The position numbers and the translations under genes were made by a program. Shown piece by piece: positions 48,801-57,295 of a stretch of 64,000 bases of DNA (position 1 is its first letter; each line of letters begins with the position of its first letter). The stretch is from Prasinococcaceae sp. CCMP 1430 (lineage: Eukaryota; Plantae; Prasinodermophyta): the NCBI GenBank assembly GCA_013416795.1, contig RQSC01001207.1, positions 178,145 to 242,144 of the forward strand. The letters are read 5' to 3'. Below the pieces are notes generated by a model. That model was not told where the DNA came from, did not search any database, and saw only the letters and a list, made by a program, of their open reading frames with translations.

Positions 48801-50015
48801 GGCAACCAGCGCTTCGCCGGCACCAACGACTTTGGCTGGCGCCTGCACGTGGACAATCCGCTTGAGGACAAGGCCGCACCTCTGTACATCGAGGGCTCGC
48901 TCACGGCGACCAGCGTCGAGGACGTGCTTGAGGGGCACGCCGTGCACAACTTCGTCGCCAGTTGGCTGCTGCTGGAGAAGAACGATGTCGACTACACGTA
49001 CATGCGCGTTGTCAGCGATCAGCCGGGGCAAAACACGTACGGGATGCAGGAGTACGGCAGCGTCGTCGCCAGCGACGAGTGCAGCGGCTACGCCACGCCG
49101 GCGGGCGTCGACACGGCCGTGGTGTGCTACCGTGCGACGCTCAGCACCGTCCTGACGGAGTTTCAGTGGCCTGGCAACTACTCCGTGTCGGAGATCACCA
49201 TGCAGGACGAGGCGCTCAGGAAGGCCAGCACGACCTTCCTCGATCAGGCGGGCCACCAGCCGCCCGTGCTGGTGGAGATCGAGCCGCCCAATCCGGATCG
49301 CACGGCGCCCGAGCTGGACGTCCGCGTGGGATACCTGAACGTGAGTGCGGCGCCCACCAACCCCGAGGCGCCCAACGGCGAGACGTTGGTGCGCATCGAG
49401 TACTTCGCGCGCGACGACAAGTCCGGGCTGGGCCACGTGAACTACCGACTGCTCGACCCGCAGGGCACATCCCACTTCGAGTACCACTACCACGACAACT
49501 TCCACACCACCTTTTTCCAGGGCGACCCCACCGCGTGGGCGCCGTACGTCATCACCGTGGTGCTGCCCGCCGGCAGCGCGCCCGGCATCTGGGGCCTCGA
49601 GTCGATGGAGCTGGAGGACAAGGTGGGCAACACGCTCTCGCAGTCCTTCGTGGAGAACGTGCACTTCGTGGCCGGCGGCGCGCGGCGCAGCCTCGCCGGC
49701 GGCGGGCGGCGGACGCTCGCCGGCGCGATCGCCGCAGCCTGCGGAGGAGGAGGAGCCGTCGGCGCATCCGCCGTCGCGGGATGGGCACGCCCTCCTCCTC
49801 ACGCGATGCGTGGCGGCCGCGGCGGCGAGGGCGGGCGCACAGCTGCTCAGCGGCGACGAATCGAATGCGCTCGGTGCCCTCGCAAATGCACCGGAGCGAG
49901 CGCAAAAACTGTACTGGCGGCTCGCTGCGCGCCGCGCGCCGCGTGCGTGGGTGCGCCTGCGCTCGCTGCGCGCGGCCGCCGACGCCGATGGCGGCGCCGA
50001 GAGCGCGGCGTCTGA
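45827..50015 (+). CDS. Secreted chimeric protein: signal peptide, Lys-rich and 6-Cys repeats, extensin-like SPPP region, bacterial-like HEXXH zinc metallopeptidase region; intron 48260-48356; true C-terminus uncertain
   Basis: N-terminal LAAALLVVAALAGALG; (SPPP)n; RLILHEKAHF...FVTAYAHEKNPDEDM/AESLSYYVENP...KYDFIRDRIM. Confidence 0.85.
46138..46419 (+). repeat. Two near-identical 141-bp tandem units, each encoding a 47-aa 6-Cys module
   Basis: Units begin at 46138 and 46279; PSPPPEDLTCSKPKKGKCRDAGCACANKKCKKCVPVEPSQPPTGL. Confidence 0.95.
46530..46845 (+). repeat. Coding (S)SPPPP extensin-like repeat
   Basis: PPPPSPPPSSPPPPSSPPPPSPPPP... in the ORF. Confidence 0.92.
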
Positions 50016-51834
50016 GCTCGGTGCGGCGGGATTGGTCTCTCTCGCTCGAGCTGGCCCAGATGACGGTAGCATGCCGACCAAGGAGCTCCTTGGGGCGCTC
50101 ACGGTCGCCGAGCTGCGCGCTGTCGCGCGCGCCGCCAATGTGGCGCTCCCGCCTGGCGCCGACCGGGCAATGCTCATCGCCTGCATTGGCGCGCATGCCG
50201 CACAGCGGCCCGCCTTCGCTGGCAAAGGTTCGGCCACACCGGACACAGCTGTGCGGGCGGCGGCGCTGGCAGAGGCAGGACCGTTGGGGCGGCTGACGGA
50301 TGCGGCGGCGGACGCGGCAGCACGGGGCACGTTCTTGTACTTTCTCGACCACGCCGCGGGCCTGAGCACGCTCTTTGTCGCCTCGCGAGGCGTCGTGCGA
50401 TTTGCTGTTCCCGAGGGCAGCCTCGCCGAAGAGCCGGGCGCCCTCGCTTTGCTGGCATTTCCTGGGGGACGTGTCGACTTGCTTCGCTACGAGGAGGCGC
50501 GCGCTGATCGCCTGCTGATCGAGGCGCTCGCGGGCCGCCGCGCAAACGACGCCAGCGAAGCCCAGGACGCCGTGGCGCAATCACAAGCGGCGAGTATGAG
50601 CGCAGAGCAGGCGCTGCACGTGGCACGCGCCGCCATCGCCGCCTTCCGCGACTGTCCTGGCTCGGAGGTGCCACCTCGCCGCCCCGAGGCATGCCCGGCC
50701 AGGCCGCTCTTCCTTGCCCGCTACAGCTCGGGATGGCAGCGTGCGCGGGCCGCGTGGTTGGCCGTGTCGCTGCTCGAGGGCGCGCGCGAGTACAGCGAAG
50801 CCGTCGGTGCGCTTGAGGCGCTCCTTCGCTGTGGCTGGTGCCTGCACAAACGCGGCGACATGTGGTATCGCCTCGCAGTGGATCTTACCCATCTTGGCAA
50901 TTGCGAGGCGGCACTCAGCGCCGCAGAATCAGCTGTGGACGATCCTTGGGTGCGAGGTGGGACCCTGGTTGCAGCGCAGCGTCGCGTCGCCCGCATGGCA
51001 CGGCCGCCTCTGCGCGATGCGCATCACGCCGCAGCCTACCGTCTCATGACTGCTGGCACCGATCCGAGCGAGACGATCGTGCACGCGCGGCCACTCGAAC
51101 AGCTCGACGATGCCCCGAATGCGCGCTCGCGCTTCTACGGAAGCTCGGGGGATGTGATGAGTGTTGAGCAGGTCGTCCTTGAGCACTACGCGGCTCCCGA
51201 AAACGGCGGCTGGCGCGGGTGCCACGATGAGGGTGGCACATTGCGCACGCTCTTCGGGCTCTTGCTCTGGGATGCGCTCTTTGACACCTCGATCCCGCAC
51301 GCCTTTTCAACGCGCTTCCAGCTCGCGCCGCTCGACCTGATGGCCGAGTCGTTCGCTCCGGCCCGCGAGGAGCGCATCGCCTCGGTGCTCGAAATGGTTC
51401 GCGCAGGGGGCGCTCCAGAGGCGGTGCGCGCTGCATGGGACGCGCATGAGGGTGCCATGTGCACAGGCGTGAGCTGGGAGCGGCACGAACGCGACGACCT
51501 CGTGCAGATCGCAGAATGCATAGGGGGGGAGGCGCTCGCTGGTGTGCTGCAGCTGCTCGCCGATGACTACAGCGCATGGTCATCGGGAATGCCAGACCTG
51601 TTGCTGTGGAGTCCGTGCGACGGTGATGGGGGGCGCAAGAGTCGCGCTCGCCTGGCCGAGGTGAAGGGGCCCAATGATGCCCTGAGCGAGCAGCAGCGCG
51701 CGTGGTGTGCGGCGCTGCGTCGCGCTGGATGCGACGTCGAGGTGACAAAGGTCCGCGCCCCGCCAAAGCGCCCAGCTGCCGGAGGATTCGCAAGCTGGAA
51801 GGCAAACAGTGGCAAGCGCCGCGCCAGGCGGTGA
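49741..51834 (+). CDS. FAN1: FAN1 nuclease (SAP, TPR and VRR-NUC domains); no in-frame ATG at the expected N-terminus
   Basis: LLSGDE...AQKLYWRL..RR; LTVAELRAVA (SAP); KRGDMWYRLAVDLTH; SVEQVVLEHY...GCHDEG; GMPDLLLW...AEVKGPNDALSEQQRAW (PD-(D/E)xK). Confidence 0.95.
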   Translation, partial: AEEEEPSAHPPSRDGHALLLTRCVAAAAARAGAQLLSGDESNALGALANAPERAQKLYWRLAARRAPRAWVRLRSLRAAADADGGAESAASELGAAGLVSLARAGPDDGSMPTKELLGALTVAELRAVARAANVALPPGADRAMLIACIGAHAAQRPAFAGKGSATPDTAVRAAALAEAGPLGRLTDAAADAAARGTFLYFLDHAAGLSTLFVASRGVVRFAVPEGSLAEEPGALALLAFPGGRVDLLRYEEARADRLLIEALAGRRANDASEAQDAVAQSQAASMSAEQALHVARAAIAAFRDCPGSEVPPRRPEACPARPLFLARYSSGWQRARAAWLAVSLLEGAREYSEAVGALEALLRCGWCLHKRGDMWYRLAVDLTHLGNCEAALSAAESAVDDPWVRGGTLVAAQRRVARMARPPLRDAHHAAAYRLMTAGTDPSETIVHARPLEQLDDAPNARSRFYGSSGDVMSVEQVVLEHYAAPENGGWRGCHDEGGTLRTLFGLLLWDALFDTSIPHAFSTRFQLAPLDLMAESFAPAREERIASVLEMVRAGGAPEAVRAAWDAHEGAMCTGVSWERHERDDLVQIAECIGGEALAGVLQLLADDYSAWSSGMPDLLLWSPCDGDGGRKSRARLAEVKGPNDALSEQQRAWCAALRRAGCDVEVTKVRAPPKRPAAGGFASWKANSGKRRARR

Positions 51835-51899: not shown

Positions 51900-52484
51900 T
51901 CAGGTCAGTGCCTCGGTGTCATTGTCGCCCGAGCTTCTCCATCGCACGCGCAGTCCCTCTGCGTCTTCGGCGCGTGTCTCGTGCCAGTGCGCGAGAGCGC
52001 GCTCGACGGCGCGCTTTCGGCCCTGCAGCCCTGAGCCGTAGCCCGACCGCCTGCGCTTGCCGTCTGGATGGCGCACGCGCCATTCGAACGATAGCGCATG
52101 TTCCCACGACGCAAAGCCCTCTACAACCCCCGCCAGCCTCCAGCTTGCCCCGCGTCCGCGTGTAGAGCGCGCGCCGCCCGCGAGCTCCCCATTGTGCTGC
52201 CTGAGGCGTCTTGTCACATCTTTGGTGGCGCCGACATAGGTGCGCGCTCCTGGCCTCACCGGCGGGCTCGCGGGCGATTCAATCACATACACAAGCCCCG
52301 CGGCCTCGGCTGGCGGGGGCGCCAGTCCTCCTTCCGCGCTGCTGTCCACGTGCTCCTCTCCCTCAGCGGCACCGCGCTCACGTTCGCGCTCACGCCCGCC
52401 TGGCGCCGCGGCCGCCTTCCTCGCCGCCCTCCTTGCGCCAGCCACCCGCCCTGCAAACGACGTCCCTCGCACCGCTGCGATCAT
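51900..52484 (-). CDS. SLX1-like stand-alone GIY-YIG endonuclease
   Basis: VYVIES...RTYVGATKDVTRRLRQHNGELAGGARSTR...WRLAGVVEGFASWEHALSFEW; no C-terminal zinc finger. Confidence 0.9.
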   Translation of the reverse strand: MIAAVRGTSFAGRVAGARRAARKAAAAPGGRERERERGAAEGEEHVDSSAEGGLAPPPAEAAGLVYVIESPASPPVRPGARTYVGATKDVTRRLRQHNGELAGGARSTRGRGASWRLAGVVEGFASWEHALSFEWRVRHPDGKRRRSGYGSGLQGRKRAVERALAHWHETRAEDAEGLRVRWRSSGDNDTEALT

Positions 52485-52835
52485 TCGAAGCAGCCTGCCG
52501 GCGCCTCCAAGCCCCCTCGCTCGAGCTTGCGCGCCCACTCGCCCTGCCGGTCGCGCCGCGCTGTGTGGCGTCGCAATGGGGCGAGGGACGCGCAAGCGCA
52601 CGGACTGCCAGTCAGCCCAAAATACAAACCCTACTTGTAAACCCCAATATGGCTTGCTTGCCCACAGCGGCGCATGGACCTGGAGCCCTCATCTGGTCGC
52701 GGGTTGGCGCTGGCAGGCGCACGCATAGCGAGGGCCAGGGCGCCTAGTAGCCAGGGCGCGCTCATTTGTACTGTAGCACATGTAGTATGACAAAATTCAC
52801 AACAATAGCATGCACACCAAGAGGCTGCTCGGCCT

Positions 52836-55800
52836 CTATATCTCCCTGTGCCGCTTAGAGCTACCGCGCTCGTCGCTCCTCTTGCGTTTCTTGTGGGGCT
52901 TAGCTTTCTCCTTCTTCTCCTTCTTTTCCTTCTTCTCCTTCTTCTCCTTCTTCTCCTTCTTCTCCTTCTTCTCCTTCTTGGCCGCCCGTTCTTTCTGCCT
53001 CTTCTGTTTATTGGCCTGCCTATTCGGCTCCTCCGTGCAGCTGCTGGTGATACGGAGCGTTAGAGAAGATTTCAAGTGCGAATGCGCGCGCGCGATTGGT
53101 GCCGGAACGAGCTCATCGCAACGCGTCGCGCACACTTACCCTGTGTCGCCAGCGGTGAGCTCCCACACGCTGAATCTACCATCCGACGCACGAATTTTGC
53201 AAAAGTCAAATGGGCGCCCCGTGCCGACACCGCCCGTCCATTCGCACACCATGAGGCCGAGCGGGACGTAGCACTGTGTCACGGCGAAGAGCTTGCCGCC
53301 CGCGCGGAGGTAGCGTGCGGCACCACACACGAGCTCGCGCGCGACACTGAAGTCCGTGTGGGCACCATTGTGTACGGGCGGGTTGCTCACCACCCAGTCG
53401 AGGCTGCCAGGCGATAGGGCTGCACCCGAAGAGCCGCCTTCCACCCCCTTCCAGCCGTCGCTCACCAGCACAGTCGCTTGGGGCACATTGAGCGCGCAGG
53501 CGCTCGCAGCAGCGGCACACGCGTCCAGTGCGTACACCTTCGCGCCATCCCCACCTTCACTGTCGCCTCGCGTGGCTTCGCACAGCGCTGCAGCGACCGC
53601 GCCCGAGCCGCAGCCGAAATCGAGCACGCGTGCCTCATCGTGCGACGGGAGGGAGCAGGGCAGGTTGCGCACGAGGAAGCGCGTCATGTCATCGGCCCGG
53701 CCGCCCGCGAAGAGCCCTGGGAGCGTCACCCAACCCGCAACCGCACGCTCCTCCTCGTGGCCGCATCGGGGCAACGCCATTGCGATCGTCTCCTTGTAGG
53801 CAGCCGCGCCCAGGTCGCCGTCGGCCAAGCGCGCTTTCTTCGACTTGCGGCGCTTGAAGGCGGCGGCCAAGCCCATGCCGGCGTTCACCTTGACCATACC
53901 CCCCCGCGCCTTCCAGAGCGCGCCAAGCTCGCCTTCACTCGCCGCAGTGAGCATGGGGCCCGCACCTTCTGCGGTAGCGCCGCAAGCCCACAGCGTCGCA
54001 CCGGGCGATGTGACGTCGGCGACAGCTCTGAGCGCCATGGCCGCAGCGTCACGCGCAGCTGGTAGGCGCAAGACGACTACCGAGTACAGGGCGCTGCTGC
54101 TAGGGGGGGGCGGCCAGTCCGTCGCACCCTCCGCGCCCTCTGCGTACGGCCGCCAGCGGGTAACTCGCGCACCCGCCTCTGTGGCTGCAGTCTCGGCCGC
54201 GTCTGCGTATCTGCCAGCAACAAGCACGCCCCCATCGGATTCACCGCCCAAATCTTTGCCTGTCTCCACGAGTGTGCCCCACCCGCCACGTTCGCGCGCC
54301 GCCAGAGCCTCCAGCGCTGCGAGTGCGCTATCGTCGCCGTCACTCGCGCCAGCCTGCGCCGCCTCCAACGCAACACACGCACAGGATGCCATGGCGTCGC
54401 GCAGAGCAAACACGCTTGCGAGCACGCGCGCGCGCGATGCCTCGTCCGCACCATCGCTCAGAGCTGTCATGCGCATGTGCACCGCCCAGCACGCGTACTC
54501 GAAGCGGCCGAGCGCCTGCCAGTCCGCACCGCCGCTGCCGCCGCTGCTACGACTGGTAGGAGCCGCAGCCACTACTGTGCCTCTGGCGGCGTCAATGAGC
54601 GCCAACACCCACGGTGCGTCGGTCCATTCCAACGCGTCTGCCCTCACACTCATCGCCCACGCCATGTCAGCCGCATCGGCGGCCGAGAGGCCGCGCAATG
54701 CACCGCCATGGACAGTGTCACGCGCATGCTGGCACATTATGGCAGCCCTGAGCAGTGCTTCAGCATCCACGCCGAGTTTTGCCGCGCCCCACGCTCCCAT
54801 CGCGAGCGTGCGCACGTTGGCGAATGCGCCACCTCGCGCGCGCTCGGCCGCATGCTCGAGGAGCGCGTGCGCTGCCGCGCTGGCCGATGCCGGCAGGCTG
54901 CTGCTGGTGTCGCCGGCGTCAACCCCACCGTGTTCGAGTGCGCCGCCTTCGATGGCGCGCGCACCGCCGCAGCGCATGCGCGCGACCGCCCAAAGGCACG
55001 TCGCGAGCGCCTGCGGATTCATGCGTGGCGCACACGCGCGCATCGCCTCCTCTAGTGCTCCCGCCGTCGCGTTGGCAACGCCGGCGCCCTCCCCACCATC
55101 GCCCGCAAATACTGTTGTCCAGTCGCACGCAAGGGAGGCCGTCGCCCACGCGGTCATGCTGAGCTCCTGCGGCATGTAGTGCAGCTCGCGCGCGCAGCGC
55201 AGCGCCGCCTCCAATGCCGCAGAGCGCGCGTGCCGACACTGTGGGCGCGAGTGCGCCTTCGCGAGCCCCCACAGCGCGGTAGATACATCGCGCTCGTTGA
55301 ATTGCGGCGCGGCCTTCACGAGCCGAGCCTCGAGTGCAGCCTGCAATGCGGCGGTACTGCAGGCCCCGCTGATAGAGGAGTCCGCACCGGCATCCCCCGT
55401 GAGCTTGCCGACAGCCCACATGGCGGTGGCTACGCCGCGCGCGTCGAACGTCGCCGCTTCTGCAGTTGCGGCGCGAAGAAGAGCTTGGAGCGGCGCGCGC
55501 AATTGGCCCTGCCCCGGCGCCTGCGCTGCTGCCATCGCCGCTGCCAGTGTCGCCATTGACCACAGCGAAGACGTAATTTGTCTTGCGTTTAGCGTGCACT
55601 GATCGCGAGCGTCGTGTACGTCCTGGCCATGGCCACCGACGACGGCGCCCACTGTCGTCGCGATCGCTACCGCCGCAGCGAAGCTCGCGCGCAGATCGCC
55701 GTGCGCGCTGGAGCGCTTCGCAGCAGCGTTGAGCGCGTAGACGAGTGTGTCCACGGGCAAACACGCCGCGAGTGCGCCGCCACCTGCCGCGCGCTTGAGC

Positions 55801-56177
55801 ACCCCAAGGACGTCATCGGCCTTGGCGGCTGCCGCAATGGAGCGCCGCAGCGCTGCCTGCGCGCGGCCGTCGTGCCGCTGCTGCTGCTGCTCCCGCAGCT
55901 GCTTCGGCCGCGGCTTCTGCACCTGCTGCTTCGGCGGCGCCTTGTCGGCCTTGTCTTGCGCCGCCCTTCCTGCTTCGCTGCCCTCTTCGACGGCCGCGGC
56001 GGCCTCTGTCTCGCCTACAGCCTGGACGAGCTGCGCCCTCAGCTCCGGCAGCCGTGCCGCCGCGGCTGCCTGTGCGGCGTCAAGTGCCGCCGGCGGGCGC
56101 GCCGCAAGCGCCGCGGCGGCCCGCACTTTCTTCCGCAGCGCGCGCGCCCACTTGTCGCCCGCCGCGCCCGCCGCCAT
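52836..56177 (-). CDS. OPR-repeat protein fused to an RsmC/MTS-family SAM methyltransferase, with a KKE-repeat tail; intron about 53044-53139
   Basis: About 7 OPR-like units (e.g. YMPQELSMTAWATASL, MNPQALATCLWAVARM); VVLRLPAARD; LPGLFAGGRADDMTRFL; VLDFGCGSG; VVSNPPVH; GTAAG...CAG intron in phase with the KKE exon. Confidence 0.87.
52908..52979. repeat. Eight copies of a 9-bp unit (CTCCTTCTT) encoding (KKE)8 on the minus strand
   Basis: Directly visible; one unit has a substitution. Confidence 0.95.
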
Positions 56178-56624
56178 CGCATGCGATGGGTGCGGCGTGC
56201 CGCAGCGCGCAGCCCGACGCAGCCCGCGCGCGCCGTGTGGCGCGGGCAGCCGCCGCTCGCTGCCCGCTGCGCGCAGCGCTCGCGCTCGGTGTAGGTTCAG
56301 GTTTAATAGCGCGTGATAAGGGTATTTAAGTAGGGTTTGAATATCTTGTCGCGCGGCTTTGGGATCATGACCGCAGCCCGCACACACAAAGATTTGGAGC
56401 GGTGCAGTAGGGGCAGCCGGCGACGCGCAGCGCCACACGCGCGCCTTTCCGCCCTCCCGTCCCCTCACGCCCCGCTGGAACGTCGCCCTTGGGTCCCACG
56501 AGTGCCCCTTCCCCGCTCTGTTGCCCGCCTGACTCGCACGCGCCAAGTAGGAGGTCGAGGCCTGTGTTGGTGCGAGGGTGCTGGCGGTTGCCCGCACGGC
56601 ACGACATTTTTGTGCGCCGTCGCC

Positions 56625-57295
56625 ATGGCTACGCGTGCGAGCGTACTCATGGCGCTCTTGGCCCTTGGCCACGCGCCGCGCTCTGGCGCATTAGATGAGC
56701 CGCCTTACTTCTGCGATGACGTCTGCGAGGCGGGTGCCAGCGCTGTCGACGGCGTCGCCTTCACCTCGTTCGTGAGCGTCACGCTGGTCAGGCCTTTCCA
56801 GCCAGATGAAGTGCTGCCTCAATGTCCCAACGGTCAGGACTTCACAGGGTTCTGTGAAGAGTCGCGCAGCCTCCTCGAGCCACTGTGTGCAAGCTGGTCC
56901 AACGAAAATAATTGCGTGCCGGGCACGGATGTGCCGACGACTTACTGCGGTATGCGATGCGAAGGCCCCTTCGAGGGCGCCACGCAGACTGGCGATGTGC
57001 GTGTCGTCTTCGACGATCAAAACGATCTCGATAGTCTGTGCCAGGCCGCCTGCGGCATTGTCGAGGCCGTGTGCAACGCCGGAGGAGGTGCGTGCGTGGT
57101 TGTGTCGCGTTCATGATCCTCCTGCTCGCGTCCCTTACCCAATGCGCTGCGTGAACTGACGAACTTGATACGCGCGAACGTGGAGGCGAGCTCACGTGCC
57201 TGGGCATCGTGAATCCGGGGCCACCAGCCCCTGAGCCACCAGCCCCAGGGCCACCAGCCCCAGGGCCACCAGCCCCCAAGCCTGCGCCTCTTTGA
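56625..57295 (+). CDS. Small secreted Cys-rich protein with (PPAPG)-type tail; probable intron 57088-57185
   Basis: MATRASVLMALLALGHAPRSGA signal, many Cys, spliced tail GELTCLGIVNPGPPAPEPPAPGPPAPGPPAPKPAPL*. The acceptor is an uncommon GAG. Confidence 0.72.
57220..57279 (+). repeat. Four copies of a 15-bp tandem repeat (GCCACCAGCCCCAGG-like)
   Basis: Directly visible; encodes PPAP[E/G/K]. Confidence 0.92.

Follow-up and report, generated by a model that had tools for sequence, protein, structure and literature searches.

A minus-strand locus in the window (the whole 64,000-nucleotide stretch of algal DNA that was analysed) probably encodes a solenoid-docked, RsmC-like RNA methyltransferase of ~1081 residues, specified by a two-exon nuclear gene and favoured to act in the nucleus, nucleolus or cytosol. 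Its sequence reads as one gene in which an N-terminal helical motif, an alpha-solenoid, both RsmC lobes and a KKE tail are joined, the splice being predicted, and it belongs to an uncharacterised eukaryotic family that is old and widespread, the fusion not being unique to one alga. Gene structure apart from splicing, domain folds, repeat homology, motif conservation and family breadth were computed. Helical-repeat RNA binders such as OPR, HPR and FASTK proteins are regarded as specific to organelles, and m2G enzymes of RsmC type are regarded as bacterial; the conserved fusion joins both.

Gene structure

The features of the locus, in the order in which they are translated, are as follows.

52836..56177, minus strand: whole coding region, two exons, ~1081 codons once spliced (ORF list and translation)
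56007..56156, minus strand: conserved N-terminal helical motif, residues 8-57 (DKWARALRKKVR...LDAAQ...), resembling the eIF2A/PYM C-terminus
54252..55907, minus strand: alpha-solenoid, residues 91-642 (all-helical AF2 model, pLDDT 84.5, pTM 0.77)
54564..55754, minus strand: repeat tract, residues 142-538, a degenerate unit (VDTLVYALNAAAKR) and seven W-motif helix pairs spaced 41-67 aa
53730..54227, minus strand: RsmC-type N-terminal lobe, residues 651-816, the non-catalytic Rossmann-like half (AF2 pLDDT 91, Foldseek)
53140..53729, minus strand: catalytic MTS lobe, residues 817-1013 (Pfam PF05175, PDB RsmC match)
53601..53627, minus strand: SAM-binding motif I VLDFGCGSG, residues 851-859 (sequence)
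53370..53384, minus strand: motif IV NPPVH, residues 932-936 (sequence)
53044..53139, minus strand: predicted phase-2 intron of 96 nt, with GTAAGT, CTAAC branch point (53063-53059) and CAG (from sequence only)
52836..53043, minus strand: exon 2, with the (KKE)8 run, KKRKR basic cluster and TAG stop (translation)

According to the ORF list and translation, the ORF on the minus strand runs from ATG at 56177 to TAA at 53138-53136 (1013 codons). The earlier note had assigned all of its quoted motifs to one reading frame, and they were found there: the single minus-strand frame 56177-53140 holds the solenoid repeats and both methyltransferase lobes. An unbroken ORF and unbroken orthologue alignments exclude two separate genes; orthologues P0001-P0005 align with the window protein end to end. 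The proposed in-phase GTAAG..CAG intron, followed by (KKE)8 and a basic tail, was likewise recognised in the sequence, with splicing itself predicted; it joins exon 1 and exon 2 in phase, its branch-point A is positioned 16 nt before the 3' end, and its GTAAGT overlaps the exon 1 TAA stop. Exon 2 (53043-52836) translates as SCTEEPNRQANKQKRQKERAA(KKE)8KAKPHKKRKRSDERGSSKRHREI, ending at the stop codon, and its frame is intact, with one KKE unit fewer, in a 99% identical TARA scaffold.

Methyltransferase domain

Both RsmC halves described in the earlier note were recovered. The C-terminal 370 residues were modelled by AF2 as a complete two-lobed RsmC/RlmG-type fold (pLDDT 91.3), and Foldseek aligned the C-half at full length to 2zwv, 2pjd and 4dcm (TM 0.64-0.71, E 1e-17 to 5e-15). 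Pfam MTS (PF05175) matched residues 817-969 with 78.8 bits against a gathering cut-off of 23 (E 4.8e-22), and the best PDB sequence matches were RsmC, RsmC-like proteins and RlmG (RsmC 2pjd, E 7.8e-14). The Pfam MTS_N model was weak on the window protein (E 0.29) and clear in bacterial relatives (1e-12 to 1e-13). RsmC (2pjd, 2zwv, 3dmf; 16S m2G1207) and RlmG (4dcm; 23S m2G1835) have tandem Rossmann-like lobes, as does the window protein, and all three possess a C-terminal catalytic MTS lobe, motif I of the form GxGxG and motif IV of the form NPPxH. Identity to RsmC and RlmG is only 19-20%, and unlike them the window enzyme sits behind a 640-residue eukaryotic solenoid and has an eIF2A-like N-terminus and a KKE tail.

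The designation RsmC-type is valid for the fold and the best sequence match and invalid in the sense of an RsmC equivalog: the NCBIfam model for the 16S m2G1207 enzyme (NF007023) gave 58.9 bits against a curated cut-off of 295, and motif IV is NPPVH where RsmC and RlmG have NPPFH. The motif I residues D, G and G were invariant across 58 family members. Of 89 fetched proteins at least 600 aa long, 77 have NPPVH and 8 have no such motif; Val takes the place of the aromatic residue of motif IV in the window protein, as it does in 77 of 81 motif-bearing long members. Because this residue is missing, the methylated base or atom could differ from that of RsmC. The near-invariant NPPVH, whose aliphatic character is shared by an uncharacterised bacterial clade, marks a distinct subfamily, the substrate of which is worth determining.

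Solenoid and repeats

All seven strings of the approximately seven degenerate repeats proposed previously are present, at residues 196-211, 244-259, 293-307, 334-349, 386-401, 452-468 and 497-510. In the AF2 model, which yielded an alpha-solenoid, each W-motif lies on the first helix of one of seven successive helix pairs. The repeats, like the Pfam MTS match, stood above chance: a leave-one-out motif HMM placed six of the seven repeats correctly, four of them being outscored by at most 4 of 200 shuffles. The HMM missed the seventh (W507), although in the AF2 model this motif, too, occupies the first helix of its pair, the seventh. The motif residues are conserved family-wide (consensus PQxxANxLWALAKL).

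Profile alignment of the repeats with hhalign gave probabilities of 98% and 97% (E 2.5e-13 and 2.8e-11) against the RAP-domain proteins P0079 and P0162 (DUF1601+RAP), and proteins matched by the repeats alone bear DUF1601, FAST_1 and RAP. Structural comparison with VIA-align gave Z scores of 21.8, 18.9, 18.7 and 17.3 against helical-repeat chains of the Polytomella, Chlamydomonas and Toxoplasma mitoribosomes, as against 10-14 for importins; the three highest were to 8a22_Xd, 7pkq_P and 7pkt_Q, given here by chain identifier. The helical-repeat proteins added to the Chlamydomonas mitoribosome are chiefly of the OPR, PPR and mTERF classes and bind rRNA (PMC8660880). By the AF2 model and VIA-align, the window protein has the helix-pair alpha-solenoid fold of solved OPR proteins. 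Pfam at E<=1 found no FAST_1, DUF1601 or RAP in the window protein, FAST_1 scores in relatives were sub-threshold only, and the repeat region by itself, used in a word-indexed homologue search, yielded three orthologues only. When the repeats were searched as a profile against PDB sequences, nothing better than E~1 appeared; these matches, to a RAP-domain protein and mL104, are suggestive and were not counted as evidence.

OPR proteins are defined by tandem repeats of 38-40 aa with a PPPEW signature (PMC6212722). Both the signature and the period are absent from the window repeats, as is a Pfam repeat-model match. The repeats are homologous to the RAP-associated repeats of OPR/HPR/FAST_1 type, and the name OPR, used in the earlier note, is right in a broad sense only. 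With green-algal OPR proteins (Chlamydomonas mL113, mL115-mL118 and mS107, and chloroplast OPR factors) the window protein shares a helix-pair solenoid, its top structural matches having Z 18-22, and a first helix of the type F-x-P-Q-x-L-A-N-x-L-W-A-L-A-K-L; it differs from them in having irregular spacing, no RAP domain, no evident transit peptide and a fused methyltransferase. Profile-to-profile homology also relates the repeats to the HPR/FASTK type (Pfam FAST_1, DUF1601, with RAP), whose published range resembles that of the present family in including alveolates and opisthokonts (PMC6212722). The enzyme module differs, being an RsmC-like methyltransferase in the window protein and RAP, a putative nuclease, in HPR/FASTK proteins. 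Fusions of helical repeats to an enzyme with comparable logic include PRORP. The same logic is seen in PPR-DYW editing deaminases, where the catalytic domain is brought to its place on an RNA by a modular array of RNA-binding helical repeats (PMC13126933). Relative to both, the window protein has another repeat class, another enzyme and apparently another compartment, and no recognition code is established for it.

Family distribution and bacterial relatives

The homologue search gave 357 representatives at E<1e-30. The architecture, for which a search of other algae had been suggested, was found in at least 64 clusters at 50% identity (64 non-redundant long members) and extends beyond algae: hosts include prasinophytes, dinoflagellates and plastid-free choanoflagellates, among them Pycnococcus, Tetraselmis, Symbiodinium and four choanoflagellates. 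To our knowledge the family is absent from animals, fungi and land plants. A second Pycnococcus paralogue has neither the N-terminal motif nor the tail. No apicomplexan orthologue with a published localisation was found in a search seeded with the Symbiodinium member. The earlier note knew of no described OPR-RsmC fusion, and searches of the published literature on octotricopeptide or heptatricopeptide repeats with methyltransferase or RsmC, and on PF26188, also returned no description of the family.

The nearest stand-alone kin of the methyltransferase part is a bacterial RsmC-like clade (27-38% identity), placed in Myxococcota, Gemmatimonadota and Alphaproteobacteria by genome scans seeded with the bacterial relatives only. 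These proteins share with the window enzyme the MTS_N+MTS arrangement, an aliphatic motif IV residue (NPP[I/L/V]H) and a C-terminal RFxVW ending; unlike the window protein they are ~340 aa long and have no repeats or tails. They score 105-137 bits, below the 295-bit RsmC equivalog cut-off. In a quick tree, one branch separated the fused from the short bacterial-like proteins (98% SH-aLRT).

N-terminal motif, tails and site of action

Conservation of the N-terminal motif was seen in 14 members of the family, among them proteins of green algae and choanoflagellates, and AF2 modelled the motif with pLDDT 96-97. Its profile, compared with 177,635 PDB sequences, had a sole match below E 1, the eIF2A C-terminus (8dys_A residues 557-602, E 0.0012), which is short and borderline. 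In orthologues, ORFs flagged as complete in transcriptome assemblies among them, 5-25 residues separate the start Met from the motif, and in the family acidic residues often come before it (MGGEEEKW, MAADGDDGGDKW). In eIF2A and PYM the matching motif is C-terminal and here it is N-terminal; its role in the window protein is putative. In human PYM, the eIF2A-like domain is reported to associate with 40S subunits (PMC4072592).

At the other end of the protein, an NLS-like basic cluster was found within the last 60 residues of 38 of 64 members, the count coming from a rough regular expression and having no background control, and several members have long KKE/KEKK runs. KKE/D tails have a nucleolar meaning in Nop56, Nop58 and dyskerin, which the (KKE)8 run and KKRKR cluster of the window protein resemble, with a putative role. 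One family member (P0006) has an additional BRCT domain.

The prior expectation was an organelle, since OPR, HPR and FASTK proteins are described as organellar and RsmC as bacterial. Judged by its sequence signals, the protein is more likely to act in the nucleus, nucleolus or cytosol than in an organelle, given the eIF2A-like N-terminal motif, the recurrent basic and KKE tails and the BRCT member; these features and the choanoflagellate members also give indirect support to the nucleolar idea.

Alternative readings

Two alternatives concern the nature of the product. It is unlikely that the protein ends at the TAA after 1013 residues and that the downstream KKE frame is a non-coding 9-nt microsatellite. 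The sole deposited gene model of the near-identical TARA scaffold does end there, with the tail listed as a separate 96-aa ORF, and a 9-nt repeat stays in frame after any slippage. An exact search of JGI metagenome contigs gave no match to the spliced exon junction, a result that is uninformative because the species was recognised only from a TARA scaffold. Against an early end, GTAAGT lies over the stop codon and is followed by the CTAAC branch point and CAG in phase, the frame runs on through KKRKR to a stop, and the equivalent basic tail lies in continuous or transcript-derived ORFs of a 49%-identical orthologue and many other members. Sequence ranking and the two-lobe fold match make it very improbable that the enzyme is of the PrmC/HemK kind and methylates protein (at glutamine or lysine). 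An NPPxx motif IV is common to PrmC and HemK, the NCBIfam PrmC model matches the window protein at 1e-9, and Val replaces the aromatic residue of m2G enzymes; however, RsmC ranks first in both sequence and fold, a match to both lobes is confined to RsmC and RlmG (PrmC, in the Foldseek list, covers one lobe only and ranks far below them), the His of NPPxH is also found in aligned RsmC sequences, and the enzyme is fused to a solenoid of RNA-binding type.

The other alternatives concern what the solenoid does and where. It is possible, though we would put it tentatively, that the solenoid serves as a scaffold for docking to a protein or particle, or as an assembly chaperone, and does not read sequence as an RNA guide, the site being chosen by the RsmC lobes and the particle context. 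The repeats are irregular, with spacing of 41-67 aa and long loops, unlike code-bearing PPR arrays; the non-catalytic lobe of RsmC itself already helps to bind substrate (PMC1934991); and mitoribosomal OPR proteins bind rRNA in several structure-dependent modes (PMC8660880). The family-wide conservation of the motif residues and the homology to RAP-associated RNA-binding repeats argue against this. We consider it rather doubtful that the enzyme is imported into mitochondria (or the plastid) and makes the m2G1207-equivalent on organellar small-subunit rRNA, with the solenoid acting as in mitoribosomal OPR proteins. This would accord with the description of OPR and HPR proteins as organellar RNA factors (PMC6212722, PMC8660880), with mitoribosome proteins as the top structural matches and with the bacterial nature of RsmC-type enzymes, whose stand-alone kin include Alphaproteobacteria. 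Rich in Ala and Arg and poor in acidic residues, the N-terminus of the window protein itself could, taken alone, pass for an organellar presequence, and the second Pycnococcus paralogue might be an organellar form. Yet the N-terminal motif is kept from green algae to choanoflagellates, often after acidic residues, unlike cleaved presequences, and the C-terminal KKE/NLS tails and BRCT fusion are features of nuclear type. A general plastid role is impossible because choanoflagellates possess the family.

Proposed function

For the favoured solenoid-docked, non-organellar RNA methyltransferase, we infer RNA as the substrate, m2G chemistry, the identity of the target, the location and any reading of sequence by the repeats, together with the repeat-guided, site-specific action that the earlier note suggested. 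The solenoid would dock the enzyme onto a structured RNA or ribonucleoprotein, where the RsmC-like core may methylate the exocyclic amine of one nucleotide, most probably guanine N2. The leading candidate substrate would be ribosomal small-subunit RNA inside a (pre-)ribosomal particle. We know of no m2G among the base modifications of yeast or human cytosolic rRNA, and no published report of m2G in cytosolic 18S rRNA was found for any eukaryote.

A more specific proposal, held with some doubt, is that of a nucleolar or cytosolic RsmC-like enzyme which modifies cytosolic small-subunit rRNA, or another nuclear RNA, to carry N2-methylguanosine or a mark related to it, is recruited by its eIF2A/PYM-like 40S-binding helix, and represents an ancient family and a non-organellar member of the OPR/HPR/FASTK type. 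If so, it would be the first such member of this repeat world, it would bring into eukaryotic ribosome biogenesis a base modification and a class of enzyme so far unrecognised there, possibly a cytosolic rRNA mark missing from yeast and human catalogues, and the ancient eukaryotic family would have been retained by many marine protists. The conserved fusion in prasinophytes, dinoflagellates and choanoflagellates, with nuclear-type tails and an eIF2A-like helix, points to an unstudied eukaryotic family of RNA-modification enzymes, and as a natural repeat and methyltransferase scaffold it could teach how solenoids position enzymes on RNA.

Database annotation

The family is automatically annotated in databases as rsmC, and distant members carry a precomputed PF26188 annotation. 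The scans proposed in the earlier note yielded MTS PF05175 and no repeat family at E<=1, with MTS_N weak.

Gene structure and predicted intron

In the GC-rich window (GC content about 0.55-0.73 per 2 kb), one ORF on the minus strand spans both the repeats and the methyltransferase, and it runs for 1013 codons from a first ATG at 56177 to a TAA stop at 53138-53136. An earlier note, made without database searches, had quoted seven repeat strings, all of which were located in this ORF between residues 196 and 510, and an in-phase GTAAG..CAG intron, the signals of which were also found. The principal features are listed here.

Residues 196-211, 244-259, 293-307, 334-349, 386-401, 452-468 and 497-510, - strand: seven W-motif repeats
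Residues 851-859, - strand: SAM-binding motif I, VLDFGCGSG
Residues 932-936, - strand: motif IV, NPPVH

GTAAGT overlaps the TAA stop, and a CAG lies 96 bases downstream, preceded by CTAAC with its A 16 nt from the end. Judged from these signals alone, the predicted 53140/53043 join would preserve the frame, and predicted exon 2 would contribute SCTEEPNRQANKQKRQKERAA(KKE)8KAKPHKKRKRSDERGSSKRHREI before a stop. The KKE frame is intact in a TARA Oceans metagenome scaffold (L001), which shares 99% identity with the window over 4.6 kb. The 9-nt repeat encoding KKE (52923-52931 in the window, 4440-4500 in L001) differs by one unit, the scaffold having one KKE fewer, and the length of the tail therefore varies between the two near-identical sequences. 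The deposited gene model of the scaffold ends at the TAA, and the tail is annotated there as a separate ORF.

Methyltransferase module

An MTS domain was identified by Pfam (E 4.8e-22). RsmC was the top NCBIfam model, yet it scored 58.9 bits against an equivalog cut-off of 295, and the only PDB sequence matches were E. coli RsmC (E 7.8e-14), Thermus RsmC, and RlmG. Residues 646-1013 were folded from a 58-row alignment (pLDDT 91.3, pTM 0.91), and Foldseek aligned both lobes of the model to RsmC (2zwv, 2zul, 3dmf, 2pjd) and RlmG (4dcm) with TM 0.64-0.71 and E 1e-17 to 5e-15, which agrees with the original reading of two RsmC halves; single-lobe methyltransferases, including PrmC, ranked far below. 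SAM motif I is intact and an NPPxH motif IV is present, although the latter reads NPPVH rather than the NPPFH of aligned RsmC sequences. This valine, at a position that is likewise aliphatic in an uncharacterised clade of bacteria, may indicate that the substrate geometry differs.

Repeat module

The repeats are homologous to RNA-binding repeats. Six of the seven were recovered in the right place by a leave-one-out HMM of the 16-residue motif, four of them being beaten by no more than 4 of 200 shuffles, and the seventh was not recovered by this HMM. No Pfam repeat model was reached by the protein; the family profile drew in repeat-only proteins with DUF1601, FAST_1, and RAP domains. When the repeat alignment was compared by hhalign with two of these RAP-domain proteins, the F-x-P-Q-x-x-A-N-x-L-W-A-L-A-K-L helices fell into register, at a probability of 98% (E 2.5e-13) for one protein and 97% (E 2.8e-11) for the other.

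An AF2 run on residues 1-645 with 30 rows gave an all-helical model (pLDDT 84.5, pTM 0.77), so that both modules of the protein are predicted to fold confidently. The model contains seven consecutive helix pairs (198-217/223-243 through 499-511/518-538), the first helix of each carrying one W-motif, with a degenerate unit ahead of them and more helices after them up to residue 642. The top Foldseek matches were trypanosomal RESC proteins and mitoribosome proteins of Toxoplasma, Chlamydomonas, and Polytomella. VIA-align Z scores for the solenoid were as follows (matched chains are given by their letters).

Polytomella 8a22_Xd: 21.8
Chlamydomonas 7pkq_P and 7pkt_Q: 18.9 and 18.7
Toxoplasma 9i05_Xd: 17.3
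Polytomella ATP synthase chain 6rd4_2: 15.6
Importins and other ARM/HEAT proteins: 10-14

OPR repeats are 38-40 aa long with a PPPEW signature, and HPR repeats are 37 aa long without it (PMC6212722). The repeats studied here are 41-67 aa apart and lack PPPEW, and are thus OPR-related only in a broad sense and nearer the HPR/FAST_1 type. The OPR label first given to them holds for the homology to RAP-associated repeats and for the helix-pair solenoid, but not for the signature or the spacing.

A repeat-only relative of 2393 aa from the representative library (P0132) carries FAST_1-type repeats (E 8e-48) together with SET, Chromo, Tudor-like, and WRC domains; this chromatin-type fusion hints that such repeats are not always organellar.

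Family members and bacterial relatives

The fusion is not confined to Prasinococcaceae sp. CCMP 1430. Among the full-length relatives, which extend to other algae as the earlier note had suggested checking, are a Logan-assembly protein at 49% identity, an "MTS domain-containing protein" of Pycnococcus provasolii, a model from Tetraselmis striata, and Symbiodinium "rsmC" proteins. When 1.84 billion representatives were searched exhaustively with a profile, 357 proteins matched at E<1e-30, many of them 800-1000 residues long with one continuous match over repeats and enzyme; in proteins of ~340 aa, the two-lobed enzyme part alone was matched. Named members include those of four plastid-free choanoflagellates (Diaphanoeca, Savillea, Didymoeca, and Helgoeca). 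Among 89 fetched proteins of at least 600 aa, motif IV was NPPVH in 77 and NPP[L/I/A]H in 4, with no such motif in 8.

The stand-alone relatives have an MTS_N+MTS organization and mostly NPPIH, NPPVH, or NPPLH as motif IV. Genome scans placed a bacterial stand-alone clade (loci L004-L077) in Myxococcota, Gemmatimonadota (Longimicrobiales), and Alphaproteobacteria. Scores of this NPP[I/L/V]H clade fall well short of the RsmC equivalog cut-off, and it may target an rRNA site other than G1207. A quick maximum-likelihood tree has one branch (98% SH-aLRT) between fused and short proteins, and so leaves room for the fusion to have arisen once.

Repeat-plus-enzyme fusions and RsmC-type enzymes are each already known kinds. 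The combination of OPR-like repeats with an RsmC-type enzyme sits in databases under automatic "rsmC" names, and no description of a repeat-RsmC fusion was found in open-access papers or bioRxiv.

Location signals and proposed function

OPR, HPR, and FASTK proteins are described as organellar in the literature consulted, and the N-terminus of the window protein itself, being Ala/Arg-rich, is ambiguous as a location signal. The N-terminal K-x-RALRKK helix that had been noted is present and belongs to a conserved motif, KW-x-R-A-L-L-K-K-L-R ... L-D-x-A-Q, which is found 5-25 residues from the start Met in members from green algae, choanoflagellates, and elsewhere; transcriptome ORFs marked complete are among them, and acidic residues often precede the motif. 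An NLS-like basic cluster occurs within the last 60 residues of 38 of the 64 non-redundant long members, several family members end in long KKEKKEKK runs, and the ORF of the 49% orthologue continues uninterrupted into KSRKEKRRR...KRQRKEK. A 1034-aa ENA member (P0006) has a BRCT domain (E 6e-6) C-terminal to the methyltransferase and ends in KRKRKHD. Because the conserved N-terminal motif is unlike a cleaved presequence and the tails are of nuclear type, a nuclear, nucleolar, or cytosolic enzyme is favoured on these sequence features. Of the two paralogues in Pycnococcus provasolii (P0004 and P0055/P0205), one has the eIF2A-like N-terminal motif as well as a basic tail; the other lacks both, and for this reason its compartment or its target may be different.

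When the profile of the N-terminal motif was compared with all PDB sequences, the sole match below E 1 was the C-terminus of eIF2A (8dys_A residues 557-602, E 0.0012). In human PYM, the eIF2A-like C-terminus associates with 40S subunits; Drosophila PYM shows no such association (PMC4072592). The solenoid would serve to dock the enzyme on structured RNA or on a particle, where the RsmC-like core would methylate an exocyclic amine, probably guanine N2. The RsmC ancestry of the enzyme and its eIF2A/PYM-like helix would make rRNA of the small subunit, within a (pre-)ribosomal particle, the leading candidate substrate. The repeats might either read sequence, by the analogy with PPR-enzyme fusions drawn initially, or merely anchor the enzyme.

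Neighbouring genes

Three ORFs flank the methyltransferase gene.

49810-51834, + strand: FAN1-like repair nuclease, 674 aa, with VRR_NUC (E 1e-26) and FAN1_TPR (E 1e-12)
51900-52601, - strand: 233-aa ORF with a GIY-YIG catalytic domain (E 4e-10)
56337-57116, + strand: divergent ORF with a hydrophobic, signal-peptide-like stretch (MATRASVLMALLALGHA...) and no Pfam match

The FAN1-like ORF is convergent toward the region downstream of the methyltransferase gene, and the GIY-YIG ORF lies ~235 bp downstream of that gene on the same strand. The divergent ORF and the methyltransferase gene have a common intergenic region of roughly 160 bp or longer.
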